Shown piece after piece: positions 26,080-53,469 of a stretch of 64,000 bases of DNA. The stretch comes from Dimorphilus gyrociliatus (lineage: Eukaryota > Animalia > Annelida), in contig CAJFCJ010000007.1 of the NCBI GenBank assembly GCA_904063045.1, positions 4,471,404-4,535,403 of the forward strand. The letters run 5' to 3'. Below the pieces are notes generated by a model, which searched no databases, was not told the DNA's origin, and saw only the letters and a program-made list of their open reading frames with translations. The first letter of the stretch is position 1; every line of letters starts with the position of its first letter. The position numbers and the translations under genes are program-made.

Positions 26080-29000
26080 CTAAACTTCCTTATTCAGAAA
26101 ACTATTGGCTAACCGCACGATTTCAGGCTTTGCAGATTTTGACGCGTATTTCTGTTCAATACGACGAGCTAACGAACTGAAAGATATAAGCACAGTTTTA
26201 GCTTTAGCTCTTCTCTTTAATAAGTTTCATGTTATAATATATTTACCTGGATGAGACTTCCGGCAACTTGTAGCTTCCATCTTCCTGTTTTTCTAACATT
26301 TCCAATACTCGGCTAATATTTCTTGTCCGCTTTCTCATTTCATCTTGAACAAATGCCATGGTTGTGTCGGGTATTGGCATTGACTCTATTCGAGCCAATA
26401 AAGAATTTAAATCATTATTTAATAAATCTAATGAGCAAGTATCCATTTTTTCGCAATTAGCCAATAATTCCAAAGTAGTATTTACATTGACATAATCGTA
26501 TAATACTTTCCCAGACTTGGTCCAGCCACATATTTTTCCACCATCTTGAACAGCCTTTTCCAGTTTTTCTAATAATGACCTAACGTAATCAACTTTCGGC
26601 TTCCTTTGAAGAAAAAGTGACTTTGGCGCTACTTTCTCAACTAGTATTTTTTCGCATTCGGTATAAGCCTCAGATTTCAATAGATGCCAACATTCTGCAT
26701 CAACGTCTCCCGAAACGCGGGCTTTAATTGCTTTTGCCTGGTGTAGATAACGCTCGGGCAAGTACAAACGATTCAATATAAATTCTTCTTCAGAAGTCCA
26801 ATCATCTTCTCCCTTTCCCAGAGTTCCGTGACGTAGAAGAACCTCTTTTATATAACTTTCGCGGCGTCTTTCATTTTCGACGTGAGCAAGAACAAATATT
26901 GACCATTGATAGAGTCCTAAGCCTTCAAGTAGAGATGCATACGATAAATGCAAACGTTCAACAAATATTTCATCTAAATGCCTATATTCTAAACTGTAGA
27001 GTGCATGCCATAAATGCCATGCTAATCTGACGTCCAACGGGTTATTTGTATAGGAATTAGTTGATAGTATATCCGACAATTTGACGCTGGCTTTATCGCA
27101 AAAGAGTTGGAGTAATTGAAAGCGAACATCTTTTGTGGAATGGGACTTGTTTTTTCCGAGATAGTCAGGTACTGGTGGGGCGCAATATGCACCATGCTTT
27201 GTTTTTCCTTGATAAGCCTCCTCGTAAGCCTCTAAACCACTTTTGATTGTATCAGTGCTCTTGCAATAGAACCATAGATGCATGGCAAGACATCTCTTCC
27301 AGTCTAGATTGTCGCAAACATTAATGGTGCCTCCATTTCCACTCCAAACCATACAACCTGCTAAAGTTGCATATATTTTCAGGTAATCTTCTTCAATGAA
27401 TAAATCAGCTTCGGTACGTTGCCAGCAGGCTAATTGTGTCCGAACAAGCTGCTTCACTTTTTCATTAGAACAAGCCTGTGCCAAGATCAAGGCCATCTTA
27501 AGGTTTCCACATTTTATCGCCAAATTGCACGCATTCTGTAACCGTCTTGCGGTCAATTCGGAGAAAATTTTTTTCTCGGAACTGCATTCACTTAGACAGT
27601 CAACAGCGAATTGTTGTAACCATTCAGTTACGTAATCTTTTCGTAGCATTTGAATTTCGTAATCAGTTCTCATATCGTCAATATTTAAGTCAGACCAAAG
27701 AGCAACGCCTAATTTCCAAACTGATGACGAGAGTTTTAATACATTATCATCTTTTACATCTGGCAAAACATTTTGTAAATTATCAGCGTAGGAATGAAGC
27801 AAACGGCTATCCTCTCTAGGTTTCAAGTGAACCAGTCTTTCACCGTTAGTGAAATCAGTAAATTCTAAAGCTGTTTGCAACAAGCATTCCGTTCCAAAAG
27901 CTGACATTGAATTTTCATCAATCATTTTTACCATATCAACTTTAAAAGGGGTTCCTACTAAAGCATCCTGCATATCAACTAGAGGCCGAATTAAAACGTT
28001 TGATGACCACCCACATCGAAAAGATCGGCATAAATCATTCACAGATTTTACAATCTGAACAGATTGTTTCCAAGGGACAAACCAAGGATGTAACGAATTT
28101 GTTCTTATTGTTGGTACAATGTTCTCATCTTCATCTCCCATTGAAGAGGGAATTAAAATTCCTTCTGGTTCTGGTTCTTCATACTCTTCATCCTTTTTAA
28201 TTTCTTCAGGTTCTTCCATCAGCTCAGGTGGAGGCTCTATTGATTTTTCATACATCTTAAAATTTCCTCCAAGTCCCGTCGATTTTGGGACAATCTTCAA
28301 GGGAGTCACTACTATTTTAAAAAGATAACAATTAATTACATTAATATTTTGAAACACTAACAATTTTAACGAAGGTTCAAAAGCAATAATTTATATAAGC
28401 TGAGAGATAAGAGCCTACATGCTATTCACTTGTCTTTCATGAAATAAGAAATAGAAACCTTTTTCATCCGTTTGCATATTAGTCTCCTCCTCTTCATCGT
28501 CGTCGAAGAACGATGCTTTCATCATTTGAACGTCATAGGCAGATACGCCTAGGCGAACAGCCAACTGATGGCTTATAGGCAGTGTAGAACGTGGTTGAAC
28601 TTCTATGTGTAAATCAATTTATTTTTATTAAAATTACAATTTTAAAATATAGAAATAAACAATCAAAAGAGCGAAGAGTAACCTTCTTCAATTTCTTCAA
28701 CAATTTTCTTGGCTTCTTCTTCTGCTTTTTCTTTTTCTTTCTCACTTTTCGTTTCAACTACTTCCTTTTCTGCCACTTTCGAGCCAATAACTTCTTTTTT
28801 GTCTATCTTCAGCTTCTTATCAACAACTTCATCTGCTAGATCGTCATCATCATCAGCTAAACCGTATCTAGTGAAATGCTTAACTTCGAAGACCCAGCTA
28901 CCTGTTTCTGGTCTATAGTCTAGGAATTTACCATCCATTTTTAGAGTCGCCCTTTCTAGTTTATTGGCATAGCGCATATCCATCAGTCGCTCAAAATCTT

Positions 29001-31649
29001 TTATAGGACTTTGAGTCGACTTATCAATAGGCCAAACGCCATCTAAGGTAATTTGAGCTCTCTTGTTCAATCCATTGCCTACTTCTGGTTTATTTTCATC
29101 ATTAGGATAAACAGTGACTTCATGTTTTCTGAAGTGAACTAAATCATCCAAATCAAGGCCTGTTATATCTGTTTGTCCATGAAAGTAGACATTTCCATAT
29201 CCATGTCTTCCTATAACGAAATTTTCGACAATGCATCTATTTTCACTGTCAATATTGGCAACTAAATCTTCCCATTTTGGATAGGTGTAATAATCACAGC
29301 GATTTAGCTTTAGGCCAGATGGATGAGTTGGACGGGAAAACTGAACTTCAGTTGTTTCTTCGCTCTCAGTTATGTCAAGAACTTTTCTAACTGAAGTATC
29401 TAGAACATGCAACGATGTATTCATTGATTTTTTTTCTTCAAGTTTTTCATTTTCTTTTCCATTGGCATATGTAGACAGATCAATTGTTGAATCAGCAGGA
29501 GATTTATTAATAGATAGATTAGGAGTAGAAACACCTCCAGGTACTTTCTTCTTGAGAACTAATTTTTTGACGTCACTTTTCTTTGAAAACACGCTTGCAT
29601 TTGAAACATCATCTTCCTCTTCCAATCCATCAAAGAGTGAATTACCCGTTGAACTAGAATTTAGAGGTTTTGGGCGAATGCGACTGGTAGAGCGTGGAGT
29701 TGAGCGTCGTCTAGTTGGATTAAACGCTGGCGAAATAGCAGCCTTTTGTGCACTTGGATTAGTTGGTTTCAAAACTTCTTCCTTTTTCTTTGGATCCGCA
29801 TTCTTTAAGTTATTAAACAATGGCGAATCACCATAAGGGTTTTGGCTTAACAACATTACTTGCTGCTGCAGCTGTTGCTGAGTATTATTTGTTGAAGCAG
29901 CCTGATTATTGGTTACAGTATTTGTTCCAAAAGAACCTAAGCTACTATTAAATAAGGATCCACTTGTGTTTCCTGTACCAGGTGCGTTAAAATTAAAGGG
30001 TTTTGGATTACTGTTATTATTAAATAATCCGCCAGTTGCTCCTGTTGTATTGGTGCCGAATGTACCTAAATTTGATCCAAAATTTGTTGCTGTTGACGTT
30101 TGACCAAAAGATGAACCAAATGATGGCTTCTGACCAGAGAAAAGTCCTCCAGTAGAGGTTGAGCTAGTTCCGAAACCTGAAAAGGATCCCATTAAAATCT
30201 CCGATGAGAGCAATAATGCAGTTAAACGTTTTCCACTTACCTGCTTGGGTTTGATTTTGACCAAATGAAAAACTAGATGCTGTAGTAGTTGGTTTTTGGC
30301 CAAACAGATTGTTTTGTTGATTTCCTTGATTAAAATTGAATCCTGTGTTTGTATTTGTGCTACCAAAAAGGTTAGTTGAAGCCTGAGTGGTAGTTGTGTT
30401 AAATCCAGTTGGCTATTAAAACGAAATTATAAATGGCAACTAAAGTAACAATGAAACTATGAACCTTTGCTTGACCGAACAAGGATGTACTTGTATTTGT
30501 ATTCTGTCCGCCAAACGTGAATGATGGAGCAGATGTAGTTGTTTGACCGAACAAACCTGTACTTTGACCTGTGTGGGGAATAGTTTTTTTTTTTAAGATA
30601 TTCAAGGATTTAAACAAAACATGATGCTTTACTTGTTTGCTGTGGTTGCTGTCCAAAGCTAAAACCTGATGTTGTAGGATTATCTTTTTTGCCAAACAAG
30701 CCACTGCTAGACTGGTTAGAATTAAATCCACTAAAACCTGTAGATGCAGAAGAAGAGGCAAAATTTGAGGTGTTTTGTGCACCGAAGAGAGTGCCGGGTG
30801 TGCCACCTGAGCCAGCAGATTTCCTGTTGGCTTCGTAGTCCTCTGTTCGTAGTTCTTCTAAAGATTTATTTTCATACTCTTTCATAGCGGTTATACATTG
30901 GTGTTTCGTGTTGACGCTTTGTGACACGCTTCCTTTCATCATAGTATCACTTCCGTGTGGAGGATTAAACTTGATAGTTGTTCCGCTTTGACCTCCTCCC
31001 GAAAATATTCCTCCTGAAGTATTGTTATTGTTACCAAACAAACCACCAGATGAACTTGCCGTATTTGAAGAACCGAATAGCCCACCTCCAGTATTGTTTG
31101 ATCCTCCAGTGGTACCAGTTCCTGTGTTACCGAATGCTGTTTCCATAAAAACAATTAGTAAAAAACTACTTTTTAATAGCTTATAAATATTTACAAAATC
31201 CTGTGGTTGAACCAAACATGTTGCCACTTTGATTATTGGTAGAACCAAATAATCCTCCTCCACCTGTTGAACTTGTGCCTCCAGCATTGGTCTGATTTTG
31301 AGTTCCAAAACTTCCAAATCCGGATGAGGTAGTGGTAGTGGAAAAACCGCTACTTCCTCCAAATATACCTCCACCTGAATTTGAATTATTGTTTGTACCG
31401 AAAACGGATTTATTTTGCTGGCCAAAGGTGGAACCAGATCCAAAAGAGCCTTTTTAGTATAAGACAATTATTGATAACTCTATGGAGATTAATAAAAACT
31501 TACTCGTAGGTGTTCCAAAGCTGTTTCCTCCACCACCAAATCCACTCGTTCCTTTAAATAGCATTTTTGTGAATTTTCAACTTAAAAAATCTTCTTTACT
31601 TACCCGTGGAGCCAAACGAAAATTTGTTGGTGTTATTTGAGCCGAACAT
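26080..31649 (-). CDS. NUP98: Nuclear pore complex protein Nup98-Nup96 precursor (multi-exon)
   Basis: FG/GLFG repeats, the GLEBS motif ([16 protein letters not shown]...[24 protein letters not shown]), the autoproteolytic domain ending [10 protein letters not shown](T)RYGL, and a Nup96 domain ([13 protein letters not shown]; [14 protein letters not shown]). ATG at 31649, stop at 26082-26080, short GT-AG introns. Confidence 0.97.
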
Positions 31650-43924: not shown

Positions 43925-44965
43925 ATGTCGAAGCGAAATATATTAAAAATTACTTTACCTAAAAATAATTTCCCTGTGTCAAATGAATTGAAAAATAAAG
44001 AACTAAGGAAGAGATTAATTGAATTAAATGATCCGCTGATATTAGTAATAGGATGGGCAGGTGGTATAGACAAGTACGTTTCCAAGTATAGCGATATTTG
44101 GGAAGAAAAGAACTGCATCACAGCTAGATATTGTGTATCGGCAGCTGATGGGTTTTCTTCTAAAGATACTGGAACTCTTGCCGCAGCAAACATAGTTGAA
44201 GAGTTACAAGAACGTTTGGGAGTTGAAAAGCGCCCTGTTCTCATACATTCTTTTAGGTACTTTTCTTATATAAGAATCCTGAGGTCATAAACTGGGTTTC
44301 TAAACTATCCGACGCCCTTTTTAAAATTTAATTAATATCGTTCAATTAAATAAAAATCAATTTAATAAGATAGTTATATTGTTAAATACTTCATCCATAG
44401 CTTGATATTAATTAACTTATCTAATAATGAATTTAAATTTTTCAACAGTAATGGCGGAGGATCCATCTACAGACGTTTAGTACAAAATGATAATTACAAG
44501 GAATTGAAAATTATAGGAAGTATTATTGACTCTGCACCTGGTAAAAGGAGATTACTGGGTGGAATAAATGCCGTTAACTCAACTTTAATTGCAATGAACG
44601 CACCTTTATTATACAGATATGCAAAAGTTGCTGTTTTTATCTTAAGAAGTGTTTTAAAAGCTATTTGGCAAACTTTTTGGGGTAAAGTCGACCATGTTTA
44701 CAAAGGTTTAATACATATTCCTGTAAGATGGCCGGAAGGATACATATACAGCGAGAAAGATGATGTCATATACGCTGATGATGTTAGGGAATTTATTGAT
44801 AACAGAAAAAGAAAGGCGGGTGGTAGCTTCGATATTGAAACATTACAGTTAAAAGATTCGGATCATGTACAACATTTACGAAAATATCCGATATTGTATA
44901 AAGAATTTTGCTTTAATTTCTTTGATAAAGCCTTTACGATTTATAATCAAAATGCTAAATTATAA
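43925..44965 (+). CDS. TMEM53: TMEM53 / DUF829 alpha-beta-hydrolase-fold protein, 2 exons (43925-44256, 44449-44965)
   Basis: Motifs LVIGWAGG.DKYVSKYS, the spliced HSF-S-NGG, IIDSAPG, YIYSEKDDVI and SDHVQHLRKYP. Confidence 0.88.
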
Positions 44966-45400
44966 ATATTCTATTAGTAGTAATTAGATCCTTACCTTTC
45001 CTTTACAATTGAACTTATTTATTGTAAGTTATGTAATTCGATAAATAAATACAGAAATGTGAGAATTTTTCACCAGATGGAGCTATCGTATAGATTTAAA
45101 ATAGATGGCAGCACATTAGGAAAGCCGGCAAAAATTAAATGAAAACGAACACCACAATGGTAAAATAGTCTGAGAGCATCTAGAACGACGCTTGAAAAAA
45201 GTACTTTTCGAAAAAAAGAGCTGATTAGATAAGAAAATTTTATGATTATCTGATAAAAATTTGTGAAAGTTAAACAGTATTTGGATTAAGAACGAAGATA
45301 TACAACTACTTTATTTAGATTATCTTACAAGAGGAATACGAATATATTAATATATATTTATAGAAACAAGATATTATACCTGGATGACAAAAAGAACAAA

Positions 45401-47639
45401 ATGAAAATTCTATTAGTATATTTATTAATAATTGGTTTACAAGAGATATTTTGTAAGGTGAGTAATTATTACATTAGCAGTAGAATTCATAGAAGAGAAG
45501 TTACCTATATGTTTGTTATTAATATATAGAAAGGTCTTTGTGAAAGACACACAAATTATTAATAAAAAACATCATGTAAGAAAATTTCTTAAGTAAATAT
45601 ACTTTTCATTTGTAGCCCATTCATGGGCAGGAAACTGTTTTTAGCTTATACAACTCCTTCAGTACTCTTCTCTCTCTCTCTCTCTCCCTTCGTCTTATCT
45701 TTAATGTTTGAATATTATATTATAAATACACTATGTATATTGGAAAATATAAGGGAGTGGGAGTAGAGTCTTTGAACGTATGAGATTATAAAAGAAATTT
45801 ATGTGTATTATCAACCGTAGTGCATAGAATTTTTAAAGAAGAATAGAGAAAAAAAAACGGCTCTCTTTTATCCATCCGTTCAAGCTTTTTCTCCTCTTTT
45901 ATATCTTTCCCACAAAACTGTTTTATTTGTTGTAAACAATTTTATGTTTGTTCAATGTAAACTTCGACCAACGTCCTCTTTAACCACGAGAGTATTAAGG
46001 CAAGAAAAAGTGAGTTTTCTCTTTCTTATATGTAAATGGCATCTGGCAACTTCTTTTTCTTCTACGGTTCATTAATATTCAAGAGTTTTTTAGAGGGATT
46101 TTTCTTTATGTCTCGCAACCAATCAAAATGCATTATGGCCCCCCACCTCCGTTTCCTTCCCTTTTTAAGCGTAACCTTTATCGTTTATTTCCACTAACGC
46201 CTATTAACACCTGGCACTAAAAGAGAGGAGAGAGGTTGAGAGAGTAAAGAGGGCAGACCGTAGGTGGATAGGAGGCGGGTGCAAAAGATAACAAGATAAA
46301 TTTCATTTAGATGCAATTTCTTACCTATATATATTAGTTAGTGGGCTAAAACGATTCCTTTTATAAGTTAACCTATTGGACTAAGCTAAATTTCGAATAG
46401 TTTTCAATAGTAGGAGCTATTCCTATCAGATTTTCGGATTGAATAGACTTTGACATTTCAATTTTTCCGACCATCTCAACCATTAATAGATGTTTTTGTG
46501 CGTGAAAAATTACATACTGACCGTAAGAAATCTCCTTTCTAAGCTCTCTTTCTTCTATTACTAATATCAAGCGTTCGGAAAAATTTTCTTGTTTCCACCT
46601 CAGCTTTAGCTGATCTTACGTAAGACGTTTGTTCAAGAATTTGAACAAATACCTTTTACCTATAGTTCGAGTGTTAATTATCTACAACATATTACGTAAC
46701 ACTTGATAATCGATTTCGAATAAGTGGTTAAAATTTTTTCTCATTGAATGTTTATATTATTTATTTAACTAGGTCGAACTACCAAAGTTTAAACAATTAA
46801 AACTTCTTTATCCTGGATACGACCGATTCGGAGGCAATTACAATAACTCTAAAATTAAGAAAACAATAGGTAATCAAGCACCTAAACTGAGAATACACAA
46901 TACGGCGTCATTGAGGTTATCTTATACACTTAACCGCTACTCTGGACGACATACAATCGAAAATCCGCCGAGCTATATAGTGGGAAAGAACAGAAAGCGT
47001 TATATCTACAAAGTAACTGAATTTTCAAAATATCTCTCTGAGAAATATGGAGATCCATTAGTTATTAAGGATGCAAATAAAATAAAAGATCAACAGGGTA
47101 TATTAATAGTTTTCTCAACTGGAAGAAGAAATTACATTGGACTATGGGATTGTGGAAAAGTATTTCAATCAAGAAATATATTTAGAAGGAAGCGTAATAT
47201 AAGAAAAATTGAATTTTGGTCAAGTCCGGGTAAGCTATATTTCTATATTTTATTACTAACTGTTATATCTGAATATATATAGTATAGAATTATACAACGA
47301 CAGTTAACATACTTAATTATTCCATTTTCTTTAAAAACTCAACTTTTTAACCTTTGTTTACAAACATACGAGTACGATTTACTATCATCTGAAATTCTAT
47401 AGTATATTTTAATAATAGTAATAAATAAGCTATTGTATTCTATTATTAAATCCTTTTCGTCATTTTGTTTATTTATTCGATACAATATTAATATATATAT
47501 ATATATATATATTGTATAATATACACAATTTGTTAAACATATTATTTTTCTATTTATAGATTCGTTCTGCTTCAAAACAAACAAATCATCAGTCTTTAAA
47601 AGGATTCCCCTTAAATTTGGTAAAGGGAAGAAGGCTTAG
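45401..47639 (+). CDS. Secreted homologue of T6SS peptidoglycan amidase effector Tae4 (domesticated amidase effector, Dae4-like), predicted catalytically inactive; 197 aa, 3 exons (45401-45457, 46773-47229, 47560-47639)
   Basis: Signal peptide MKILLVYLLIIGLQEIFCK with donor AAG|GTGAGT, in frame with the acceptor actag|gtc. The domain is colinear with recalled Tae4 blocks: NTASLRLSYTLN vs NACPIRMSYVLN; VGKNRKRYIYKV vs TGSDKKRYMFRV; QQGILIVF vs KQGIIIF; NYIGLW vs GHVTLW; FWSS vs FWSL. Confidence 0.85.
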
Positions 47640-48736
47640 ATTTCTCATTACTTGTTTTCCCCCTACCACTACTACAGTTCCTCCCATCTACACAACGCTA
47701 TAGTCTCGCTTCTAAAACTTGCAAAAATGTTCTCCTTATTTCTTCTTTGTTCTTATGTTTTACAGTTGGCTGTCTAGTCATAAACTTATTATACTGTATT
47801 AAATGAAAATAAGAATAAAATAAGTATCTAGTATTATTAGATGTTATGATAGTAGCGTATATCTTATTTGTTGCTTTCTCTTGCACCAGAGGTCACTGCT
47901 GTGACTGTATTATACCTACATAAGTGAACAAGCAATATTTTAAATTTCTAAAAAAATAAATGAATAATACACTCCTAGCCTGAGTGAGCTAAGATGGCGC
48001 CACTTTAGTTATAGTAGATTTTAGATGTTCAATTTCTCGGAACGAACTTCAGCAAAAGTTTTCAATGTACCTTGCTATATTGGAATTTATCAATTATTAC
48101 ATAAAATATGTAACATGTGTAGTGTGAATAGAAGAAGTGAAGAAGAAAAAGGTTTATTATAGGGATAGAGTTGAAACATACGAAGAAAATAAATCAAAGA
48201 GAGAAACTGTCCTAGTAGTCATTAAAAGCTAATTACTAATACAGATAGACGAATCTTAAAGTTATATAAAATTCTTTTGAAATTAACATACGACTAGCTG
48301 CGGAATATATCAGTAGATATAAAGAAAATAAACCTAATTAGCATATTATCCCTTTAATTCTAAGGGAAGAATTTTCGTTTATTATAAGACTCTATTAATT
48401 ATCGTAATTATAGTTTATCTTGGGTTGATATATAATAAAGACTACATTCAATTTAGAATTGTGGAGTACTACGAATGGGGTTTATCTTATTTCTATCTAA
48501 TTGAATAACTAAATAATTAACTGTAATAGTAATAAGATGAAGGGAGGCTCTATTTTTGGCATTTTATATTTTACCTCTTAGGAGCTATTCTAGCAAATAC
48601 TTAGAAAACTTACAAAAGCTTCTCGTGTGGAATTTTATTTATTCGTAAAGAGAAGAACTGATAGGCTCAAACTTGTAATTTTTTTATACATATAAAGAAG
48701 GGGAAGTATTCATACCTTTATTTATAAGAGAATTTC

Positions 48737-50696
48737 ATGGAGAACCTTAAAAAGATTGATCCATTTGCTCCTGATTTAAAAGATTTCGCACCCAAACCTG
48801 TTTTACCTGTACCCTCCAGTTTTAAACCTAATATTAATTCACCCTATTTTATTGAGAGTTCATTAACTTCCAGAGAAGCCTGTTTACGTGTTTTGGCAAG
48901 TGAAAATGGTGGATCCGTGTTAGATATTAACTCGGAACTTACAGACGCCAGTTTGGAATTTGAGATGGAATCTGCTTCGAATACTAATTTTAATGTTGAG
49001 CATTCGACAAATTTGAGGTTTTTTTCTTTATATTATCATTACTCTGTTCTATTTGTTTATTGTGTAAATAAATTGGAATTTTACTCGTCTTTTAGCCTAA
49101 AGGATAGGGATTTAAATGATTGCTCAATGTCGACTTTAAATTTGAAAGAGATAGCAGATAATTCCTTAAATTACATTAAAACTGTATGTCTTGTATATTC
49201 AATTGTATATTTATGCTATTTACGACGAATATACTATTTATAACATCTAGAGGTATCGAATAAACAACTTTTATACAGACCAAGACGATAACAATATCGA
49301 TTTTAAAGATTCGATTTATTCGATTTTTACAAATTTAACGTTCAAAATATATGGTAATAATTTTTTTACACGTTCATAAACATGAATAATATTAATAATT
49401 TAACATATTTAAATATTAGACGGTGAAGTATTGTTATATCCTTGGAAGAAAACGAGGAAGTCATCACCTATCTTCAAGAATAATTGTGAAGCTAACCGTA
49501 AGTTCAAAATTTGATTTTTCAAAGAGAAACGATCTTTTTTATATTTGAATAAAGAAGATTACTGAGAGTCCATTGTATTATCTTCAGCTTCTAACTTACC
49601 TTTTTCATCTTCCCTCCAAAAAACACCTTTTTCAAGTGTATTAAGAAGACATTCCCATGGAAGTGGTTGTCGAAACAAATATAGTCAAGAGAATTTGAAT
49701 ACAAATGACTGGCGTCCACCAACTTTTCAATTGATTTATAATTCGTACGTATTACCGAAAGATTTAAATATACAATTAACAATGCAAAAGCGGAGATGCG
49801 TCGGATGCGGATCAGACGTAAGTATTAATATAATGAATTAATATAAACTCAATTCTATTCATTTGCTGATCTCTATTATTAAGATATCCAAAGCAACTTT
49901 TACCGGTTTAAGATTTTGCTACTATTTCGGAAAATATTTTTGTTTATGTTGCCACGACAACTCAAAATGCTTCATTCCAGCTAAAATATTAAGAAAATGG
50001 GATTTACAAGCATATCCAGTTTCAAATATTGCTAAAAATTTAATACTACATGAATGTAATAATATTGAACAGTGGTCTTTAAACCTTCATGACTGGAATC
50101 CAGTATTATTCGATAAAGTACGTGTTTTAAACGAAATTCGAGGGTTACGATATTACTTTTTGATCATTTATTCATATATTACGGAAAATTGTTTAAAGAA
50201 TCCAAGGTAAAACAACACCTCATAATAGTATAGATTATGTTATCCTATATTTTTTCCTTTTGGTATATTTATCTTATAAGCAATAATTCTATTTTATTCT
50301 TTAGTTTGGCAAGAGAAATTGAAAAATTACCTCTGCATTGGTTGAATTCTCGTGATGATTATACAGTATTTGATTTAGTTCAAATTGGAAAAGGAAATTT
50401 TCTGTTTACTCTATCGAGAATTGTTAAAATTTGTAAATCCCACATTGGAAAATGTAAATTATGCAAAGCTAAGGGAGCCTACTGTGAATTATGTAAGAGT
50501 AACGATATCTTATTCCCTTTTGATGCGTATAAAGTTTGCCGTTGTATAAGTAAGTACCGAAGAAAAAGACTTTGAATAATAATTAATTATATTTCTTTCT
50601 TTAACATTAACAGATTGTAAATCAATTTTTCATCAAAATTGTTTAAAAAATGATTCTACGTGTCCAATTTGTCTGGAGAATGAAGAAAATGTTTGA
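48737..50696 (+). CDS. Rubicon/Pacer-like protein with C-terminal Rubicon-homology (RH) Zn-binding domain; no RUN domain seen
   Basis: DWRPPTFQLIYN...QKRRCVGCG, RFCYYFGKYFCLCCH...IPAKILRKWD...YPVS, CKLCKAKGAYCELC..NDILFPF and CKSIFHQNC...CPIC. The start codon is uncertain. Confidence 0.8.
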
Positions 50697-51127: not shown

Positions 51128-52021
51128 TTATCTTAATTTCTTATCCAAGCATATTTGAGAAAGAATATGTTCGTCAAATACCAATTGTTCTATTAATGAG
51201 CATTTAGGATGTTTTAGACGTTTGACCATTGGTAAACATTTCTTCAGTATTGAACATTTAGCAACAACTACCCGATTTTTTGGTGTTTCTTTTTTATGAT
51301 TCCAATGGATACTTTCGCATATTTCTAAATCTTTAGGATGCTTTATTACTCCAGTTGTAAATTTTCTAGTTACTGGTAAGTCTATAGTTAAAAATGGTCT
51401 TCTCTTTCCGAAATAGAACTGTTTTTTAGTAAAACAGGTCAACATTGTTAAATCATCTATACATAGTTTTCCAAATTTGTCACTAAGAAAGAATATATCT
51501 AAAAATGGCCATGTATAGTTAAAAGATTTAATTGTTTTCATATTTCTATTGTAAAATTTCCATCTATGATTTCCAGTTGATAGAAGATAATCAGAATTTA
51601 AATTTTCAATTATATTATGAAATCTTTCTTGATCTTCTCTAAGCATAACAATATTTATATCATCGTTGTAAGGTATTATTCCATGGTGTCTCCATATACC
51701 TAATTTAGATCCAAATACTAACAGATAGTGAAGCTGATGTTGTTTGCTAATATAATCGAATTCTTTCAAAAGTTGTAAAGTAGCATTTAATTCTTCTATT
51801 GTCATAGCCGGTTTAAATTCAGGAAACTCTTCGTACAATTCAGAGCAGACTGGAAATATTTGGGTTATATTCGATGACCAATAGATGAGATTGTCATTTC
51901 TAAACTCACGAATAGGCCCAAACTTCCTTATTATTGTCTTATTAGTAGAAAAATTGAATAGAAGAACGACCACGCAAAAACCACATATAATAATGGCGAC
52001 ATTTTTCACGTATCCGTTCAT
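51128..52021 (-). CDS. LicD/fukutin-family nucleotidyltransferase-fold type II membrane protein, intronless
   Basis: N-terminal anchor (VAIIICGFCVVVLLF) after the probable ATG at 52021; motif FGSKLGIWRHHGIIPYNDDINI; WKFY...WPFLDIFF. Confidence 0.85.
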   Translation of the reverse strand: MNGYVKNVAIIICGFCVVVLLFNFSTNKTIIRKFGPIREFRNDNLIYWSSNITQIFPVCSELYEEFPEFKPAMTIEELNATLQLLKEFDYISKQHQLHYLLVFGSKLGIWRHHGIIPYNDDINIVMLREDQERFHNIIENLNSDYLLSTGNHRWKFYNRNMKTIKSFNYTWPFLDIFFLSDKFGKLCIDDLTMLTCFTKKQFYFGKRRPFLTIDLPVTRKFTTGVIKHPKDLEICESIHWNHKKETPKNRVVVAKCSILKKCLPMVKRLKHPKCSLIEQLVFDEHILSQICLDKKLR

Positions 52022-53469
52022 ATTTATAAAGATGAAGAAGAAACAAAACTGAAAAAAGAACTTGCCCTCTCTCTCTCTCTCTTTTACTGTCTCTTCAATA
52101 GATTTTAACTTGTTCACAGAATTAACAGAACTTCCACAATACCAAGTGTAATGAGTCACTAACTATAACATTTATATATATATTTTCTTTTTAGGTTAAT
52201 GTTAGCTCTTTCCTCCCACGTTCCTTTAGCGTATACTTTTTCTAAAGCAGAAAAGGCGAAATTTCTAATAGATTATATACTAATTTCAAATTCAAACATT
52301 AGTCTTTTGACTTTCCTTAAATCATCTTTTCATTCTTTAATTTAGATTCTAATGTTTCTTATCTCACTATTTTTGTTCAAAGTTGTCACTAAAGAGGAAG
52401 ATAGAAAAGCGTTTTTAAAATATTTAAATAATTAATTTAATATTCAACTAGCTAGTTAGTCTGTTGGTTACGTAACAGAGATAAGAATGAAATATTATAC
52501 AAATTATTCTATTAGGCTAAACTAAAGGTATAACTTACCCTTGTTTACTATACGAATCTTCAACGATTTAAGGAAATCTTCGAAAAGAAAGTTGAACTTA
52601 TCTTTTGACAATGGCTCCCTCTAGTTTATTATAAATAAGTTGAGATGAACATATACTTTCTTAGAAATTTTATTAGAGGAATGACGTGTTCGAATAATTA
52701 AATACTATATAAATTTATAAATCTATATATAGTTGATATAACATCTACACAGTTAAGGACTTGTAAAATGTACTTATTCCAGAAGTGATAGAGTAATTGA
52801 TTATTTGGAAGGTGTCATAAATCTTTGGGAGAGAAATATTAGATATTTCTTTTGTAAAAAATGAACAACTGAGAAAGAGAAAGTGGAAAAGCTCAGGAAA
52901 GAGACATAATCAATCATAGGAGTAAAGTTGGCATAAAACTTCCTATTCATTTTTCCATTGAGAAATTAAGCACAGCAATGATTCAATACAAAAGAGTTAA
53001 AAGGAGAGAATAAAATAATATTCAATTGAATTAAAAATGGACTTAAAGACATGTATTTCTTTAAATTCAAGGGGAAGGCTAAAATGAGATATTTTCATAT
53101 TGAAAATTTGAATTTCTATAAATCATTTACAACAATATTAAGGGCTATAATTATTTAATCATACTAATCTTTTTCCTTTATATTACATATAAATACTTTA
53201 GATCTATAATAATTAATATGAAAAGACCTTCATATACTATTTGCTTTAGTTTCTTTCAGAAGTTTAACAATCGTAAATTTAGGTTATTTGTTCCTCATCA
53301 TATTGAAAAACCGTATTGAAAAACATGCAGTAGGCATTGGTACATTTTCAAGTCAGTTTTTATTTATAACTATAAGAGATAAAATTAACCTATAGTGTGA
53401 TTGTTCAAAGTATTATATTAAAAAAAGTAGTATTCTCATTTTATCTCTAAAATTATAAGTAAAGTTTCA

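Follow-up and report, generated by a model that had tools for sequence, protein, structure and literature searches.

Domesticated type VI secretion system (T6SS) amidases are the classic example of animals taking over bacterial weapons and, to our knowledge, have so far been studied as enzymes. What, then, might a dead Dae be for? It could sense peptidoglycan, act in agglutination, kill by its positive charge, or do something that has nothing to do with microbes. The question is raised by a three-exon gene at positions 45,401–47,639 of a 64,000-nucleotide stretch of the genome of the annelid Dimorphilus gyrociliatus (contig CAJFCJ010000007.1; this whole stretch is called the window below), which had originally been predicted to encode a secreted homologue of the T6SS toxin Tae4 with both catalytic residues lost. 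We found that it very probably encodes a real, expressed and conserved Tae4-fold protein, which lacks the whole catalytic triad and belongs to an old spiralian clade, and we lean towards a non-enzymatic role for it at bacterial surfaces.

Tae4 homology and the state of the catalytic triad

The product of exon 2 matched the Pfam Tae4 profile PF14113 over practically its whole length (profile positions 2–125 of 125) with an E-value of 9.5e-8 and 32.6 bits, above the cut-off of 27, and a six-frame search of the genome with the same profile gave 32.9 bits at the gene. A phmmer search of the PDB returned Tae4 of S. Typhimurium (4j30, 4jur, 4hff; E-value 1.4e-5), and the ESM Atlas feature search pointed to Tae4 clusters with a score of 0.97. 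In addition, the exon 2 domain was modelled with AlphaFold2 from 30 homologues, with a predicted local distance difference test (pLDDT) score of 94.4 and a predicted template modelling (pTM) score of 0.89. When this model was compared with the PDB using Foldseek, ranks 1–11 were all Tae4 or Ssp structures (template modelling (TM) scores 0.65–0.81, probability 1.0), and the next match had an E-value of 0.23. The profile score above the cut-off and the Tae4-only structural matches thus bear out the predicted descent: the exon 2 product is a Tae4 homologue, and the model indicates a complete Tae4 (NlpC/P60 papain-like) fold.

Mutation of Cys44, His126 or Asp137 to alanine has been shown in each case to abolish the toxicity of Tae4 (PMC3695027), and the C63A variant of the Nematostella enzyme nvDae4 is likewise inactive (PMC8713801). 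The corresponding positions were read from a HMMER alignment to 4j30, whose chain numbering was corrected for the tag and checked against Cys44 and His126 of the published protein (PMC3695027), and from an L-INS-i alignment with 100 relatives. Both alignments placed an alanine at the catalytic Cys and a tyrosine at the catalytic His (Table 1), and the two replacements originally predicted were found at exactly the codons named. Asp137, the third triad residue, was aligned with Gln151; this lies in a loop region and the assignment is of moderate confidence. The CxDxC loop of the bacterial proteins is also absent: in the L-INS-i alignment, CSDSC and CGDHC of the bacterial matches stand opposite VFQSR, again in a loop and with moderate certainty. 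The mature protein contains two Cys and two His residues in total. Because none of the three triad residues is kept (Ala stands in for Cys, Tyr for His and Gln for Asp), the protein is, judged by its sequence, incapable of Cys–His amidase chemistry.

The gene model was examined against public transcript data. One contig of 922 nucleotides and depth 267 from run X1 joins 45211–45455, 46771–47228 and 47559–47768 with GT..AG at both joints (contigs aligned to 44301–48300); the joint 45455/46771 is the cut at +2 relative to the exon 1 end at 45457 and the exon 2 start at 46773. The predicted junctions are exactly those of the contig, therefore an mRNA with these junctions exists, and all coordinates of the proposed three-exon gene, with introns of 1315 and 330 nucleotides, proved right. 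The spliced coding sequence of 594 nucleotides gives a protein of 197 amino acids. The introns were covered by separate contigs only, at depths of 3–10 as against 267 for the spliced contig, whose depth was not below that of either neighbouring gene (their contigs had a depth of about 147). X1 is the sole public run containing the transcript; it dates from 2017, the kind of library is unrecorded, and its contigs turned out to be spliced transcripts. It possibly belongs to the same project as the assembly and would thus not be an independent sample of the organism. The first exon encodes a hydrophobic leader of 19 amino acids on its own, and in the relatives described below the same xE(L/V/M)PKF motif is likewise immediately preceded by a hydrophobic leader, as judged by eye. 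Two microsatellites were also seen, (CT)n at 45661–45697 inside intron 1 and (AT)n at 47480–47527 inside intron 2, and an Rfam search of 44000–49000 gave no match.

Table 1. Positions in the window of the Tae4-like gene, of its residues of interest (precursor numbering) and of neighbouring genes
Feature	Positions	Strand	Codon	Remarks
5′ untranslated part	45211–45400	+		Transcript contig (record 2 of run X1) starts at 45211; depth 0 in bin 44971–45104
Exon 1, coding	45401–45457	+		19 codons; hydrophobic leader resembling a signal peptide, M-K followed by a stretch of I/L/V/Y; donor AAG/GTGAGT
Intron 1	45458–46772	+		1315 nucleotides, GT..AG, phase 0; acceptor ...aactag; spliced out in transcript contig
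Exon 2	46773–47229	+		152 codons and first base of an Asp codon; whole Tae4-fold domain
Ala64	46905–46907	+	GCG	At catalytic Cys44 of Tae4
Tyr140	47133–47135	+	TAC	At catalytic His126
Cys146	47151–47153	+	TGT	In LWDC; first half of clade-specific cysteine pair
Gln151	47166–47168	+	CAA	Aligned with Asp137; moderate confidence
Intron 2	47230–47559	+		330 nucleotides, GT..AG, phase 1; spliced out in transcript contig
Exon 3, coding	47560–47639	+		Finishes Asp, then S-F-Cys175 (TGC, 47568–47570), basic tail of 22 amino acids, stop TAG (47637–47639)
3′ untranslated part	47640–47768	+		Transcript contig stops at 47768; sequencing-adapter letters beyond
DUF829-domain exon	44402–44965	+		Eukaryotic neighbour; transcript contig at 44447–44932 runs on into other exons
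Nup98-96 (autopeptidase S59 plus Nup96)	26243–30366	−		Eukaryotic neighbour
LicD-family exon	51128–52159	−		Eukaryotic neighbour

Spiralian relatives and the history of the loss

An exhaustive profile-free protein search returned 58 proteins, while word-indexed searches gave only 1 and 25 matches. The nearest named relatives are uncharacterised proteins of the annelid Owenia fusiformis (CAH1783042) and the brachiopod Lingula anatina (XP_013403138); further ones come from the bivalves Dreissena (XP_052269735), Potamilus and Sinanodonta, the cuttlefish Acanthosepion (Sepia) pharaonis and the nemerteans Tubulanus (XP_074642288) and Lineus (XP_064630890). In a maximum-likelihood tree, 27 animal proteins including the Dimorphilus protein formed a clade with support 100/93. 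Within it, the Dimorphilus protein and its closest relative P0001 (98/93) stood on a long branch as sister to the other 25 members (97/98). The neighbouring clade consisted of bacterial Tae4 proteins with intact Cys and His, one of them annotated as Tae4 of a Nannocystales metagenome-assembled genome.

No member of the animal clade has Cys in the nucleophile column (0/27); Ser was found in 14 proteins and Ala in 10, and the rest have Lys, Asp or Thr. In the His126 column there are 20 His, 5 Arg and 2 Tyr, a pattern that calls for three independent losses of the His. P0001 itself, which was found on nine short Logan contigs, is 66% identical to the Dimorphilus protein over all 152 codons with no insertion or deletion, and has Lys where the Cys and Tyr where the His would stand. 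Lack of the nucleophile is thus nothing peculiar to this gene but common to the whole spiralian clade; just the His-to-Tyr change and the very high charge described below are specific to this lineage. The Ser residues stand exactly at the old Cys position (among the proteins concerned are P0007, P0010, P0013, P0015–P0017, P0019, P0042 and P0095), and most of these proteins keep His126.

Other features are shared within the clade. At least 90% conservation was found at 23 positions, including T63, R67, S69 and N73 of the nucleophile helix and L143, W144 and D145 of the His strand. The Cys of the LWDC motif (Cys146) is present in all 27 members and in only 1 of the 28 proteins outside, and in the L-INS-i alignment it co-occurs with a conserved C-terminal DSxC motif, the simplest reading being that the two Cys residues form a new Cys146–Cys175 disulfide. 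L011, a distant relative with 38% identity, has a cag acceptor immediately ahead of M-E-L-P-K-F and a GT donor right behind the S/T-P codons. Both introns of the gene in the window occupy these same positions. A simple pattern search did not find exon 3 of L011. In many single-exon gene calls of the relatives, the position of intron 2 is read through as P-G-x.

The genomic contig of P0001, L002, contains intron 2 at the same place and in the same phase, followed by D-S-F-C. Its leader exon was not found in the 636 nucleotides available upstream (L002 1–636). Another open reading frame ends there just 474 nucleotides upstream of exon 2, with no recognisable leader exon in between, and this upstream frame has no similarity to the DUF829 gene of the window, thus no synteny was seen on that side. 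Comparison of the two coding sequences gave a nonsynonymous rate (dN) of 0.22 and a saturated synonymous rate (dS) of 2.4–4.4, and hence a dN/dS (omega) of approximately 0.05–0.10. The identity of intron 2 and of the DNA upstream of exon 2 was at random level between the two species. It had been proposed that a ratio near 1 would mark a decaying pseudogene; the ratio found is far from it and indicates that the gene is under purifying selection and is not decaying.

The mature Dimorphilus protein is unusually basic, having 40 Lys and Arg against 11 Asp and Glu residues, a net charge of +29 and an isoelectric point of 10.4. The domain alone has a net charge of +21, compared with −4 to +12 in the domains of the relatives. 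The tail that follows DSFC adds 22 amino acids with a net charge of +8. Such a basic C-terminal tail had been predicted as a gain of this protein; its presence was confirmed, its being a conserved or specific gain was not. After DSxC most relatives also have tails that are mostly basic or His-rich and cannot be aligned, and in L002 apparently only about 5 residues follow DSFC, although a run of A makes that end uncertain. The tail thus appears to be a variable feature of the family.

The simplest history compatible with these sequences would be a single old acquisition of a bacterial Tae4 into animal genomes. The nucleophile would then have been lost, and the leader, the two introns and the cysteine pair gained, all before the split between annelids, molluscs, brachiopods and nemerteans; the His, by then without use, would have disappeared repeatedly afterwards.

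Two other clades of Tae4 homologues were also noticed. One (P0009, P0018, P0021, P0024, P0026, P0029, P0030, P0032, P0043 and P0097–P0110; L012 4001–4693) is found on large eukaryote-like metagenome contigs, a Stanniocalcin-domain gene being the neighbour in L012. Its members have mostly Asp at the Cys position and mostly Ser at the His position, and most of them end in an x-G-K/R read-through that suggests the same second intron. The other (P0033, P0035, P0037, P0058 and P0077–P0089; L014 4001–4657) was found on contigs whose neighbouring gene has a Hint domain of animal type. There the catalytic Cys is kept, the His position is occupied by Ser, Asp or Asn, and an extra Cys is present two residues before it (motif D-V-C-S-I-L-L-W), so this third clade may have a rearranged active site.

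Possible roles of the protein

If the protein no longer cuts, what could it be kept for? Amidase-dead peptidoglycan recognition proteins (PGRPs) and catalytically dead lysozyme-like proteins act without catalysis, and we propose a similar fate here. The protein would be secreted, its old substrate groove would bind rather than cut, and the mature protein with its charge of +29 would attach to anionic bacterial surfaces, that is to peptidoglycan, teichoic acids and lipopolysaccharide. Its role would be that of a recognition or agglutinating factor, or of a non-enzymatic cationic antimicrobial. Long retention without the nucleophile, the newly acquired leader, introns and cysteine pair, and the repeated loss of the His all point to a selected non-catalytic function, and the nucleophile helix and His strand being among the most conserved positions of the clade suggests that the old ligand site is still used. 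Indirect support for a role directed at bacteria comes from Nematostella, where 2′3′-cGAMP, acting through NF-κB, induces both tae4 homologues together with antibacterial genes, the homologue that lacks the catalytic Cys included (PMC8713801).

Several points weigh against this proposal. The net charge would be just as fitting for a protein that binds nucleic acids, mucus or extracellular matrix, unrelated to bacteria, and the leader on which secretion depends was assessed by eye. With dS saturated, omega is only approximate, and the LWL85 and YN00 estimators failed for the same reason. In addition, those relatives that combine Ser at the old Cys position with His126 might remain hydrolases, in which case the ancestral role would have been enzymatic and not one of binding. 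We put the chance that the function is directed at bacteria at slightly better than even; the proposal as a whole, a conserved Tae4-fold protein without its triad and with a non-enzymatic role at bacterial surfaces, seems to us reasonably likely.

Alternatively, the protein could be conserved and secreted for a job unrelated to bacteria, the Tae4 fold serving as a scaffold and the charge serving to bind a host receptor or host polyanions such as mucus or cuticle glycans, egg or cocoon material or extracellular nucleic acids. This would agree with the net charge, with the tail differing even between the two closest orthologues and with the loss by the clade of every feature tied to catalysis. 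It would leave unaccounted for the residues of the nucleophile helix and the His strand that are still conserved at the old site, and the induction of both Nematostella homologues together with antibacterial genes also argues against it. We consider such a role rather unlikely, with perhaps one chance in a few of being correct.

It is improbable, in our view, that the protein still works as a hydrolase with a different set of residues, such as Ser65, which adjoins the old Cys site, in combination with His61 or His79, both conserved in the clade. Most clade members do have a Ser at or beside the Cys site, His79 shows at least 90% conservation, and a His often occurs three residues ahead of the old Cys. 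On the other hand, the two positions in question are Ala-Ala in Owenia and Thr-Ala in Sepia, so there is no conserved Ser nucleophile, and the three losses of His126 suggest that there was no working catalytic pair to keep. Single alanine substitutions in the triad are, moreover, enough to kill Tae4 and nvDae4, and the only two Cys residues of the mature protein occupy paired structural positions.

The gene might also be a relic that is still transcribed while decaying into a pseudogene, as could be imagined from the missing catalytic residues and from the transcript being held by only one sequencing run. The frame is nevertheless intact in two species whose proteins share only two thirds of their residues, and it has been preserved at low omega while introns and flanks diverged beyond alignment; the fold is predicted with high confidence, the transcript is cleanly spliced and deep, and the clade persists across four phyla. 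We therefore regard a relic as very improbable.

Finally, apart from the bacterial ancestry of the domain nothing speaks for bacterial contamination or an assembly artefact, which is already refuted by the two spliceosomal introns removed in the transcript. Against it stand also the position of the gene 4.5 Mb into contig 7 (assembly searched: 77,897,245 bases in 349 contigs) among the Nup98-96, DUF829 and LicD genes, a base composition that matches the host (GC content of the exons 33%, of the window 30%) and intron positions common to other animals. The claim that this is an integrated host gene was thus upheld by its introns and spliced transcript. Searches of the assembly with the family profile and with the protein itself found the gene in a single copy, so the genome has no active paralogue; other members of the family in the same genome had been considered as candidates and were rejected by these searches. 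Neither a T6SS context nor an adjacent Tai4 immunity gene was seen, the neighbours being the eukaryotic genes of Table 1.

A bolder version of the proposal can be given only tentatively, and we rate it as doubtful. The family would be ancient and pre-spiralian, the T6SS toxin having become a non-catalytic secreted peptidoglycan receptor or opsonin, and the dinophilid copy would have been driven further into a super-cationic direct antimicrobial without any triad residue. If true, this would be a second independent invention of a dead amidase as a sensor, beside the PGRPs.

Comparison with known Tae4 and Dae proteins

The Dimorphilus protein resembles bacterial Tae4 (PF14113; 4j30, 4hff, 4jur, 4hfl) in its profile family and fold (TM score 0.8 at about 21% identity), and it keeps the nucleophile-helix motif N-T-x-x-L-R-x-S-Y-x-L-N and the strand motif x-x-L-W-D. 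It differs from them in having none of Cys44, His126, Asp137 and the CxDxC loop, in the missing T6SS or Tai4 context, and in the eukaryotic leader, two introns, new cysteine pair and basic tail of its gene.

The Dae proteins, among them tick Dae2 and Nematostella nvDae4, are Tae-derived, intron-bearing, secreted animal proteins under purifying selection; nvDae4 belongs, like the Dimorphilus protein, to the Tae4 lineage (PMC8713801). Both Dae2 and nvDae4 are enzymatically active and need the catalytic Cys to kill, whereas the Dimorphilus protein has no triad residue. Of the features that mark Dae proteins, introns with a transcript (both GT..AG introns are removed in one contig) and purifying selection were found, and the hydrophobic leader makes secretion a candidate third, while Cys-dependent bacteriolysis is not to be expected from a protein with no Cys at the site. 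By descent we therefore place the protein in the Tae4/Dae4 lineage; by function it should not be filed as an amidase, because the three defining catalytic features were looked for and none was found.

A precedent is the second tae4 homologue of Nematostella vectensis, which is an animal Tae4 homologue without the catalytic Cys as well and was mentioned and then set aside in the 2021 paper (PMC8713801). Active Dae proteins and this Cys-less paralogue were thus already known. In the literature searched, which excluded Chou et al. 2015, we found no description of a pan-spiralian clade without the nucleophile or of a triad-less super-cationic member. Chou et al. 2015 reportedly defined dae1-4.

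The spiralian relatives (Lingula, Dreissena, Owenia, Lineus and Tubulanus) share with the Dimorphilus protein the missing catalytic Cys, the LWDC...DSxC cysteines and a leader before xELPKF. The intron positions, before xELPKF in phase 0 and after S-P in phase 1, are shared wherever genomic DNA could be read (L002 and L011). Unlike the Dimorphilus protein and its orthologue, which have Tyr, most of them keep His126; their domains are also less positively charged than that of the Dimorphilus protein. At least four animal phyla thus retain a branch of Tae4 that lacks its nucleophile, a distribution that speaks for a very long retention.

The amidase-dead PGRPs are alike by analogy, since there too an amidase fold without catalytic residues is kept as a secreted protein for binding or sensing. 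Their fold is unrelated (zinc amidase_2, T7 lysozyme type, not the papain-like cysteine peptidase fold), and their binding is documented, whereas the worm protein is known here from its sequence and predicted fold. Among dead Dae proteins, the Dimorphilus protein offers the cleanest test case for their function, because no residue of the triad is left in it and no active paralogue in the genome would confound a knock-down.

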